Shown here: positions 7,558-10,469 of the stretch, piece after piece
Position numbering within the stretch: position 1 is the first letter of the stretch
How the letters are laid out: each line of letters begins with the position of its first letter
Origin: Dimorphilus gyrociliatus
Lineage: Eukaryota; Animalia; Annelida
Direction of reading: 5' to 3'
Assembly (NCBI GenBank): GCA_904063045.1
Contig: CAJFCJ010000006.1
Coordinates: 2,718,946-2,782,945 of the forward strand
Length of the DNA stretch: 64,000 nucleotides
Translations under genes and position numbers: made by a program
The notes under the pieces: model-generated
Told to the model about the DNA's origin: nothing
Database searches by the model: none
The model's input: the letters and a program-made list of their open reading frames with translations, nothing else

Positions 7558-8786
7558 CTATAGAATTAGTTGATTTAGTAGAGTACCGTCAATTTGTAAA
7601 ATTTCGTTGCATCCAAGAAGTGATATAGACGATAAACCATAAAGCGTATCCAATGAATTAGGCTTTTTTCCTATTGACTGAATAAATCCACCGTACACTT
7701 TGTTTTGTAGCCTTAAAAGTTTAGCCTTAAATTGATTTTTATCTAGAATATCCAAAGATCCTTTTAGAATCTGCAGAAAATAGATAATGATTTTTACTAG
7801 AAAATTATTTAACAATTATTCATTTCTTAATACCTGTACAGACGATAAAGTAAGAAAATATGATGCAATACTCCTATCTTCGTTCTTAAATTCAATTAAT
7901 TTTGATGATACGTCATCAAAATGATTGACAATTCCAGACAGTTCGGCTAAAGCTAAAATATAATTTGCAGATCTGAGTTCGTTTTCAGAAGTATGGCAGT
8001 TTTCAAAAACTTGTTTATAGTTCTATAATATTAAAAAAAAATCAATTAATTAATTCAATAGAATAAGAATATATTATATTATTTATTACGTTGTTTTTTA
8101 TTAGTCTTGTAAGTTCATTCTGATCAGCTTCGGAAAAGCTACCAATAAATTTCTTAATAATCGTCTGATAAAAAATCATCTTTATCGAACTGTTAGATAA
8201 TAATCAAATAATTATTCGTAAATATTTACATTGATATCAAATAATATACCTATTACTTATAGAGTTATCAATAAAACATTTTAAAAATTTCCTATTTTTT
8301 AGCTGAGAGATATCGTCCCCAATCAATTTTAATAGTAATAATGCATTAGTTGCATTTATTATATCCGAATCTTTAAAAGTAGCTATCTGTTAAAAGAATC
8401 AAATATTTCGATTATTAAATTGAATAAGGCAAAAAAAAAAAAAGAAAACTTTATACTTCATTTATAGCTAAGCATTCTAACGCAAACAGGGCTTTCTTTC
8501 GTAATTCTTTTTCATTCTTAATAATTAAATTATCCTTCCTTAATAATTTTAAAGAAATTAGTACATTGCAAATATTCTTCAACCTGTTTTAAAATATACA
8601 TATATAATATAAACAATTCGCCTTTTAATAATTTTTACCTACTGTTGAACGCTCAATATGTCGTTTTCCTTGTTTATAATTTCACTCAACTCCTTTCTTA
8701 AATAATCATCGTGCAACTGTAATCTGAAGCAATTTAATTGCTTTTGTAGGCTGTCGGCCATCCATTTATCTTGAATTACTTGCAGC
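7558..8786 (-). CDS. Degenerate second GGTase-I beta-like domain (about 300 aa), probably the 3' exons of the PGGT1B gene
   Basis: Exons 8786-8643, 8583-8457, 8386-8250, 8189-8090, 8022-7834 and 7770-7558 splice (all GT-AG) into a stop-free frame. It aligns to the PGGT1B domain: FRLQLHDDYL vs [10 protein letters not shown]; TFKDS..NALLLLKLIGDDI vs [18 protein letters not shown]; GGFIQ..PNSLDTLYGLSSISL vs [20 protein letters not shown]. Confidence 0.8.
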
Positions 8787-8903
8787 CTAATATAATTAGA
8801 ATACTATTAAGATTGGCTAATGCTGTATGTTTGGCATATTATTTACTTGTATAAAGAATATACTACAATTAACATGCATAATTTAGAAATAATGTAGAAA
8901 ACC

Positions 8904-10469
8904 TTACTTTTTGACTGCTCTCGAACTTATATTCAGAGCAGGGTTCATGTCGATTACTCCCTCTTCATCTGATAAGGCCAAGGACGATATAGCGAAATAA
9001 GAATGTAACAAATCTGGATTGGCATCTTCGTATTTAGCAAATCCTCCTCCAATAACTGATTGAGTTTTGGAAAGAAATTGTCTATTCTTATCGTGGTCGA
9101 TTAAATCGCGAAAACCTAATAGCTTTATAGAAGAAAATTTTTTCATATCTTTCCTAAATATTAAAACTATCCGACGTACTTTTAGCGTTGAACCAATCCA
9201 AAATGAATAGCACGTGTCGATGGGTTTGTTGGGTCGGCCTTGAAATCCCTCTTCCTGTCTCATTAAACACCACTTTTGCAGGTTGTCATATTGCTTTGAA
9301 CTTAAAACATGGAGTTGATTCATTAAATATAGTGAAGCAACGGCGCAAAAGGTTGAACCACCATGAGCTTCGAGACCGGGTCCTTGGGCGAAAGCTCCCT
9401 CGTAAGTCTATAAATTAAAAATGAACGCTTAATATAAGACGATATTAAAGAGATCATAGAACTCACCAAGCTGTCTTTGATGTACCTGACGCTCCTATGA
9501 ACATCAATCTTCGACCAGTCATCCAAAATATGAAAAATTACTGAGGCACAATAAATGAATCGCATATCATTTTCACTTCCTCCAAAGTGGGCAGCAAAAC
9601 TAAATGAAAACAACACAAGTATTAAGTCTTCTTATTGGCATAAAAATATTTGAGCAAACCTTCCATCTTCGAGCTGTAAGGCTGCTACTCCTGTTGCAAT
9701 AGCATCTTTATCAATTCTTTCTAAATCATCACCAAGAATAATTAAACTCAACAAAGCTGAAAAAGTCATTGTAATATGACTAGTAGATTCCTTAAAAGTC
9801 TATAAAAATGATGTTCATTCAATAGTGAAATATTTAGAATAGTATCAATTTACGAACTTGGAGTAAATGCCTGTCTCCATATAAATGAGAGCCGACAAAT
9901 CCACATTTTTCTAAATTGGTTCCTAAAATAATAAAAGTTTCTTTGTAAAACAGTTTAATATTAAGTAAGGGGAGGAGAGGTGGAAAATCACTTAAGAGCC
10001 CTATCTAAATTAAATGTTTCGGTAGGCGAAACATATTAATTTACTTTTTCTTTCAGACTTACAATAGCTACTAGTTTTTTCTTAGCTTATTATACGCTAA
10101 AAAAACAGTATTAACAATAATTTAAGCATATATCTCTATTTATAATTATTTACTTGTTGAATTCGGTAAAATTTGAAGGGAATAGATCCATTCAATAACG
10201 CCTTTTTGTTCCTTAACTAAATCTAAAGAATCCAATAGTTCTAAGCCAGATATTCCAAAGAAGGCGAAGGTTAATCTAAAGTCGAAATAAAAGTTTTGAA
10301 CGAAACGTGGAAGTTAATTTTAAAAAGTCGTTGATATGGACAATATATAAATTTACCGAATTGGATCCAAGTAAGCATATCGGGCAGGAAGAACATCCAA
10401 GCATCTCTTAAAATATTTAGAATGTACTTTAAAATTGAAAACCTTTTCCTTCTCAGCTACATCCATCAT
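8904..10469 (-). CDS. PGGT1B: Geranylgeranyl transferase type-I beta subunit (catalytic domain; may continue by splicing into 8786-7558)
   Basis: Seven exons encode [67 protein letters not shown] and PDLLHSYF. The zinc ligands D, C and H are intact. Confidence 0.95.

Follow-up and report, generated by a model that had tools for sequence, protein, structure and literature searches.

In a 64,000-nucleotide stretch of the genome of the annelid Dimorphilus gyrociliatus (contig CAJFCJ010000006.1, positions 2,718,946 to 2,782,945; hereafter the window, whose numbering is used throughout), we analyzed a minus-strand gene at 10469..7558. It encodes the beta subunit of protein geranylgeranyltransferase type I (GGTase-I beta, PGGT1B), followed by a diverged second domain of the same type. 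Three-frame translation combined with splice-site motifs gave a gene of 13 exons that runs from an ATG at 10469 to a TAG at 7558. Its open reading frame (ORF) of 1926 nucleotides comprises 641 codons plus the stop codon and has no internal stops. The product is 641 amino acids long when counted from the first ATG (10469), and 640 amino acids as annotated from the second ATG (10466); the public D. gyrociliatus annotation holds a single gene here (L009:9920-12828, equal to 10466..7558 of the window), with a 640-amino-acid product assigned to PF00432. An earlier note on this DNA, made from its letters alone, had described an intact six-exon frame beyond an apparent PGGT1B stop codon and a fused product of about 640 residues, and both are present, the frame on the minus strand. 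We conclude that the locus very probably encodes one polypeptide, made of an intact GGTase-I beta (residues 1-347, copy 1) and a degenerate second beta-type domain (residues 348-641, copy 2).

Copy 1 begins with exon 1 (10357..10469), which encodes the N-terminal helix of GGTase-I beta, and exon 2 (10154..10275), which ends in phase 1. Exon 3 (9858..9922) covers a PGGT1B-specific insert region that has no counterpart in copy 2. The toroid repeats follow in exon 4 (9660..9799, with the motif ..LGDD.. and a phase 2 end inside a split Ser codon; PF00432 E 1.3e-8), exon 5 (9467..9599; E 1.4e-9), exon 6 (9180..9407; E 2e-31) and exon 7 (8908..9122; E 4e-12). Matches of these four exons to PF00432, from E 1e-8 to 2e-31, are collinear with profile positions 75-304. 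The catalytic repeat lies in exon 6, with HGGSTF, GRPNKP and the zinc ligands D-T-C, and the last repeat of copy 1, in exon 7, carries the zinc His (PDLLH), so that the zinc site is intact in the first domain, as the earlier note had claimed. The zinc ligands Asp, Cys (D-x-C) and His, together with the H/R/K diphosphate residues, align to chain B of the GGTase-I structures 1N4P and 8RDX. Exon 6 scored 110 bits against GGTase-I beta, 61 against farnesyltransferase (FTase) beta and 55 against RabGGTase beta, and exon 7 scored 60 bits against GGTase-I beta, as against 36 bits. In a tree, copy 1 grouped with 29 PGGT1B sequences with a support of 99/95. Judged by these comparisons, residues 1-347 are a GGTase-I beta that is conserved and complete; presumably it binds the shared alpha subunit and carries out the chemistry.

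The end of copy 1 is split by an intron. The apparent stop codon at the end of exon 7, AAG TAA (TAA at 8906-8904), overlaps a splice donor, AA|GTAAGG, from which intron 7 (8787..8907) extends for 121 nucleotides; it is of the GT..AG type, lies in phase 2 and has TTAG at its 3' end. Splicing of 8907-8787 yields ..SSRAVK-K-LQVIQDKW-MADS.., and if this intron were retained the TAA would end the protein at residue 339. The bridging exon 8 (8643..8786) opens with eight codons, LQVIQDKW, that correspond to the end of the PGGT1B C-terminal helix. Its Trp is followed directly, in the window, by the first Met of copy 2 (ATG at 8761), with which the part of the exon that codes for the N-terminal helix of copy 2 begins. 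Beyond exon 8, a TAG in frame (8641-8639) would be read only upon retention of the following intron. We compared this junction with PGGT1B of two other short-intron animals, L003 and L006, which were retrieved via exon 6. The L003 protein ends in ..SHRTVEHLHKLHSKW-NSC-stop (..LHSKW-NSC-stop), that is, with an equivalent helix and then a few residues, and the L006 protein ends in ..SMKSYENLKSLHEIRSH-stop (..LHEIRSH-stop). Because both proteins end just after the equivalent helix, the helix split by intron 7 is the normal C-terminus of PGGT1B. The helix is also conserved in a related species represented by contig L007 (see below). By sequence, the exon starting at 8786 thus contains the true end of PGGT1B, as had been proposed in the earlier note, whose description of a stop overlapping a donor and of a phase-2 intron joining both parts also proved accurate.

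With its 121 nucleotides, intron 7 is about twice as long as is usual in this gene (57-81 nucleotides), and no further copy of it was found in the window. Intron 2 of copy 1 is long as well, in both species: it measures 231 nucleotides in the window (9923-10153) and 186 nucleotides in the relative (L007:12852-13037), compared with about 60 nucleotides for its neighbours. Long introns of the D. gyrociliatus genome have been reported to hold regulatory sites.

The second half of the gene comprises the remainder of exon 8 and exons 9 (8457..8583, 55% identical to L007), 10 (8250..8386, with the conserved motif ..LKLIGDDIS..), 11 (8090..8189), 12 (7834..8022) and 13 (7558..7770, with the stop codon TAG at 7560-7558). 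Exon 10 ends in phase 2 within a split Ser codon, like exon 4. The similarity between both halves was detected by BLASTP (23% identity over 223 amino acids, E 5e-7) and by a global hhalign alignment of residues 1-294 of copy 2 with residues 1-342 of copy 1 (286 columns, E 5e-5), which begins with the N-terminal helix (F..H..Y..[RK][RK].L) and reaches as far as the first part of the C-terminal helix. Exon 13, the last toroid repeat, matched PF00432 with an E value of 7.4e-5 at positions 241-299, like the last exon of copy 1, and its score of 22.7 bits is under the 26.5-bit cut-off. These matches bear out the view that the second domain is a diverged beta domain. In the profile alignment, the residues D-T-C and His of copy 1 are replaced by S-I-A and Asp in copy 2 of D. 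gyrociliatus and by N-V-I and Ser in the relative, which agrees with the loss of zinc ligands that had been noted before. Exon 12, the counterpart of the catalytic exon 6, is 13 residues shorter, and the R/K diphosphate site falls within this deletion; through two more deletions copy 2 has lost the exon-3 insert and a loop of the GGF type. As read from the sequence, residues 348-641 are predicted to be a full-length degenerate toroid of beta type that is catalytically dead. That copy 2 folds into an alpha/alpha barrel is suggested by its collinearity with copy 1, the sole indication of this fold.

Copy 2 has motifs of its own that are conserved between the species and do not occur in PGGT1B: ALFALEC, CHTSE and HFDDV, within 7834-8022 and 8457-8583. 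The conserved Cys and His residues of these motifs might constitute a new site.

Transcription of the locus was evaluated in public RNA data, in which two runs were found to contain the stretch: X1, a coral metatranscriptome, and X2. Run X2 yielded one contig of 4705 nucleotides with a depth of 142, from which all introns have been removed, including 8787-8907 and 8584-8642. Joints observed in both runs were 10275|10357, 9599|9660, 8583|8643 and 8022|8090; joint 9922|10154 was seen in the X2 contig, and RNA joints were also recorded at 9799|9858, 9407|9467, 9122|9180, 8189|8250 and 7770|7834. The row for joint 8386|8457 was filtered at a run of T, and this joint is inferred from the contig coordinates, in which the remaining length is precisely that of exons 9 and 10. 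The joint between the two halves, on which the earlier note had placed the decision, is present in the X2 contig along with all the others (8908|8786, aligned as 8785/8907 with the cut at +1). The short contigs of X1 cover five joints with an identity of at least 99%. No intron-retaining contig was present among the X1 and X2 contigs, although contigs cannot show absence. The further suggestion that an unspliced form would supply the normal enzyme is unsupported, with no intron-retaining contig and with a relative that has no intron at this place.

In the segment covered by X1 (7526-10514), the X1 strain differs from the window in copy 2 at three positions: 8120 (silent), 8677 (Ile to Val) and 8685 (Ser to Asn). 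Since the X1 run contains spliced D. gyrociliatus transcripts that are at least 99% identical, the worm, or a strain very near to it, lives in the coral sample.

The upstream neighbour of the gene is NCBP1 (cap-binding protein subunit 1; 10781..13036, minus strand), a 100% match to DgyrCDS4852 of D. gyrociliatus. The X2 contig is unspliced through 10357-10800 and includes all 311 nucleotides that separate the stop codon of NCBP1 from the start of PGGT1B (10470-10780), which points to overlapping transcripts or transcriptional read-through. An operon or trans-splicing was considered and rejected: both operons and trans-splicing have been reported absent in D. gyrociliatus (PMC7854359), and no loose ends were found at 8786 in the RNA contigs.

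The same locus was recovered from related species. L007, a Logan contig of 21 kb, has the gene order of the window, namely RINT1, a gene of 518/540 amino acids, NCBP1 (61% identity) and PGGT1B, and the order around NCBP1 is common to L007 and L009. PGGT1B of L007 is 79% identical to copy 1 of the window, with the same six introns. A single exon, L007:13842-14200, contains the last PGGT1B repeat, ..AIQDKW and the beginning of copy 2 without a stop codon. The 121-nucleotide intron is missing from this exon (site L007:14040-14080), which across the site encodes as many residues as the spliced product of the window. At the joint it has ATA instead of ATG, and copy 2 reaches its first Met only after about 68 residues. 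Three more copy 2 exons follow in L007, with intron positions and phases as in the window, and the contig extends no further than exon 11. The remaining exons are represented in L001/L002, a locus syntenic with the downstream genes of the window (65-96% identity): its exons 12-13 are orthologous (51% identity; 52% for exon 12), with the same intron, the same stop codon and no indel. L007 and L001, found in separate samples, may represent one species or two. On these sequences, intron 8787-8907 is read as a gain specific to the D. gyrociliatus lineage in which no residue was gained or lost. An in-frame fusion, as the earlier note had proposed, is concluded from three independent lines: the spliced X2 contig, the single annotated product and the uninterrupted exon of the relative, which at the joint lacks an ATG.

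The sample of L001 also contains an NCBP1-like gene (L008:10001-12271, 55% identity) in another neighbourhood, preceded by LDL-receptor repeats and followed downstream by an Exo_endo_phos/GRF zinc-ribbon gene. Either the sample contains a second species, or this NCBP1 has been relocated or duplicated.

In order to assess the constraint on copy 2, Nei-Gojobori estimates were obtained between the window and the relatives, with silent sites saturated throughout (dN and pN, nonsynonymous distance and proportion; pS, synonymous proportion). For copy 1 against L007 (346 codons, 79% amino acid identity), dN was 0.125 and pS 0.70. Exons 8-11 of copy 2 against L007 (161 codons, 45% amino acid identity) gave a pN of 0.317 and a pS of 0.644, the excess of pS being significant (Fisher 1e-8), and exons 12-13 against L001 (133 codons, 51% amino acid identity) gave a dN of 0.315 and a pS of 0.66, compared with a dN of 0.137 and a pS of 0.70 for the neighbouring genes (840 codons). 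Overall, pN of copy 2 was 0.26-0.32, versus a pS of 0.64-0.66, and identity in exons 12-13 was 63%, 81% and 52% at the first, second and third codon positions. Copy 2 is under purifying selection and about 3-fold less constrained than copy 1. The comparison of substitution rates with related species that had been suggested for this gene has therefore revealed a constrained domain, and a pseudogene was rejected, given the intact frames and the purifying selection.

The exon-intron structure of copy 2 was compared with that of copy 1 and of RabGGTase beta genes (RABGGTB). Intron phases are 2,1,0,2,0,0 in copy 1 and 2,-,0,2,0,0 in copy 2. In an automatic profile alignment, three of the five shared introns coincide exactly. 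Another lies two columns off and coincides in an ungapped comparison, in each copy 25 residues ahead of GDD; the first shared intron agrees in phase and in its distance from the next helix, in a region where the alignment is uncertain. The earlier claim of five shared positions and phases stands, and for the first one the same place is more likely than the offset of one residue given in the earlier note. RABGGTB genes were fetched from metagenomes by a DNA pattern for PDVCYSWWV, and 23 full-length ORFs were built. In intron-bearing, animal-like RABGGTB loci the introns lie near residues 37/38, 104-106, 156/157, 193/194, 231, 260/261 and 285-287. The introns that both copies share fall at about 46, 89, 132, 175 and 250, with the second intron, found in copy 1 only, at about 79; none coincides with a RABGGTB intron, in a comparison that covers animal-like metagenome lineages, the worm's own RABGGTB not being among them. 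The seven positions are those shared among the genes L014, L055, L059, L083, L098, L101, L104, L107 and L116, which have none in common with PGGT1B. L101 appears to hold two tandem RABGGTB copies.

Several observations weigh against the reading of the locus as a single polypeptide in which PGGT1B is followed by a copy of itself. A contig is no proof that any one molecule extends over the entire gene, and the X2 contig continues into NCBP1 upstream and so merges transcripts of at least two genes. Of the copy 2 exons taken singly, Pfam and PDB sequence searches recognised exon 13 only, and exons 8-12, alone or as two-species profiles, gave nothing beyond chance matches. The two-species profile of exon 13 scored 52-54 bits against RabGGTase beta (PDB; E 1.6e-13), 24 bits against GGTase-I beta and only 15-17 bits against the neighbouring PGGT1B exon, with 7-24 bits against PGGT1B overall. 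In maximum-likelihood trees of whole domains and of C-terminal halves, copy 2 sat on a very long branch at an inter-family node, and forcing it together with dinophilid PGGT1B cost 6-10 log-likelihood units (approximately unbiased test, p about 0.05). On the merging of neighbours in the X2 contig one could build the explanation that two proteins are made, PGGT1B and an adjacent, overlapping paralogue, copy 2 being translated from ATG 8761 on a read-through RNA; in D. gyrociliatus an ATG does lie exactly at the start of copy 2. We consider this highly improbable, since no stop codon separates the C-terminal helix of PGGT1B from the start of copy 2, which follows in the same exon and frame, since in the relative the joint codon is ATA, the intron is missing and about 68 residues pass before a Met, and since only one product is annotated. 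Two separate genes are likewise rejected on the shared exon and the ATA of the relative. It is also very hard to credit that copy 2 is a translated but functionless tail, decaying after an accidental loss of the stop codon. Its evolution about 3-fold faster than that of copy 1, the loss of all catalytic residues and the failure of most of its exons to be recognised in Pfam and PDB searches would fit such a tail, but its 294 codons and five introns show no frame break in either species despite the saturated silent sites, pN is at most half of pS (Fisher 1e-8), second codon positions are 81% and third positions 52% identical, and the position of the stop codon has been kept.

As to the ancestry of the second domain, copy 2 probably arose by a head-to-tail tandem duplication of PGGT1B, because all of its five introns lie at PGGT1B positions and phases and because it is located head-to-tail behind PGGT1B. 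An unlikely alternative is that the second domain derives from RabGGTase beta, so that the protein would join two different beta paralogues. It would account for the scores of exon 13 given above, for the profile of the whole copy 2, which puts most RABGGTB sequences over PGGT1B, for a length that, without the exon-3 insert, is closer to that of RABGGTB, and for the shortest tree paths, which go to RABGGTB. Against it stand the five introns at PGGT1B positions and phases, the seven intron positions of RABGGTB in several animal-like lineages, none of which coincides, and the place of copy 2 immediately downstream of PGGT1B on the same strand. Moreover, its signal comes from a single repeat: the whole copy 2 profile scored 13-44 bits on the 23 RABGGTB ORFs and 21 on dinophilid PGGT1B, all from the last repeat. 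In the trees copy 2 lies on the inter-family branch, outside RABGGTB (clade support 61/72 and 85/82). The RABGGTB zinc-site signature (GRPEKLPDVCYSWW) and the zinc ligands are absent from exon 12 in both species. Compared with RabGGTase beta (RABGGTB/Bet2; PDB 1DCE, 3PZ1, 6J6X and 6O60, chain B), copy 2 is most similar in its last repeat (D[RK]EKL, TL.G...LSLLG) and similar in length, but it lacks the zinc ligands and the PDVCYSWW motif and differs in exon-intron structure. Under an origin from PGGT1B, which we prefer, the RABGGTB-like last repeat of copy 2 is unexplained. The phrase "copy of itself" in the earlier note is hence upheld by gene structure and position and not by the sequence trees, nor by the last repeat, which is nearer to RabGGTase beta.

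The steps at this locus may be reconstructed as follows. PGGT1B would have been duplicated head-to-tail, after which the stop codon and the spacer were lost, so that the last helix of copy 1 came to run directly into the first residue of copy 2. This fusion would be older than the split from the relative, with which silent sites are saturated, and D. gyrociliatus would later have acquired the 121-nucleotide intron within the junction helix. Canonical GGTase-I beta (PGGT1B/Cdc43; PDB 1N4P and 8RDX, chain B) resembles residues 1-347 over the whole length, including the zinc and diphosphate residues and the C-terminal helix; it ends a few residues past this helix, whereas here a 294-residue beta-type domain follows with no linker.

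In the solved prenyltransferases, the barrel of beta is shut at its lower end by the C-terminus, on the side that faces neither alpha nor the mouth of the active site (PMC9141697), and the extra domain is therefore expected to hang at the closed end. The loops that are shortened in copy 2 are those that line the open end of the barrel, beside alpha and zinc (PMC9141697). Copy 2 could be a non-catalytic module held in cis that serves as a platform for docking or localisation at the closed end of the barrel, in the manner of the immunoglobulin and leucine-rich-repeat inserts of RabGGTase alpha, a specific form that we put forward tentatively, at somewhat less than even confidence. The adaptor, alpha-subunit binder or regulator of the earlier note would be candidate roles. 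Copy 2 is unlikely to form an active site of its own or to bind alpha in the canonical manner. We regard it as quite doubtful that the last repeat converged on RabGGTase beta because it binds RabGGTase alpha, PTAR1, REP or a geranylgeranylated product. If this were true, binding of a partner of the RabGGTase type would physically couple CaaX-type and Rab-type geranylgeranylation, or, alternatively, the repeat would provide GGTase-I with a built-in module for lipid handover. The immunoglobulin and leucine-rich-repeat domains of RabGGTase alpha (PMC1994686, PMC9141697) are likewise lineage-specific non-catalytic additions distant from the active site; unlike copy 2, they are on alpha, have other folds and did not arise by self-duplication.

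The literature search found no description of a fused or duplicated GGTase-I beta, although the gene model itself is public, and a beta subunit fused to a dead beta copy was found described for no prenyltransferase, in line with the earlier note, which knew of no such architecture. According to a survey of 43 eukaryotes, the architecture of beta is conserved and GGTase-I subunits are not duplicated, dosage balance being suggested to forbid this (PMC1994686). The run accessions of the relative were found in no paper. The second domain is absent from PGGT1B of L003, L004 and L006. A phmmer search with exon 13 against 1.84 billion representatives returned one true relative, a fragment (P0001), and otherwise repeats. 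Word-indexed protein searches gave no candidate with exon 7 and, with exon 6, PGGT1B fragments of other organisms, the close relative not being among them. A feature search of the ESM Atlas with exon 12 gave no usable match, nor did scanning metagenomes with the alignment of the last exon turn up a relative.

Two other systems can be compared with this arrangement. Class II terpene cyclases (squalene-hopene and oxidosqualene cyclases) have two alpha/alpha barrels per chain, and thus likewise carry two tandem barrels of the same broad fold class on one polypeptide; there, however, both barrels are ancient and form one joint active site, whereas here the second barrel would be a recent, degenerate copy of a prenyltransferase beta subunit. 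In Trypanosoma brucei AdoMetDC, a dead paralogue, the prozyme, activates the active partner (PMC5201418). This is also a case of an inactive duplicate kept by selection beside its active parent, but the prozyme is a separate polypeptide with a demonstrated activating role, and the dead copy described here is covalently fused.

Protein prenyltransferases are seen as built on a fixed plan of one alpha subunit and one single-domain beta subunit. At the D. gyrociliatus locus, a duplicate of the beta subunit would have survived through fusion to its parent and loss of catalysis, so that the stoichiometry stays 1:1. The finding raises the question of which partner this dead barrel binds, placed as it would be at the closed end of its parent subunit. 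With duplication, stop loss, loss of the zinc site, trimming of loops and a later intron gain as steps that can be dated at one locus, it would offer a clean natural case of a pseudoenzyme domain born from a subunit of an obligate heterodimer.

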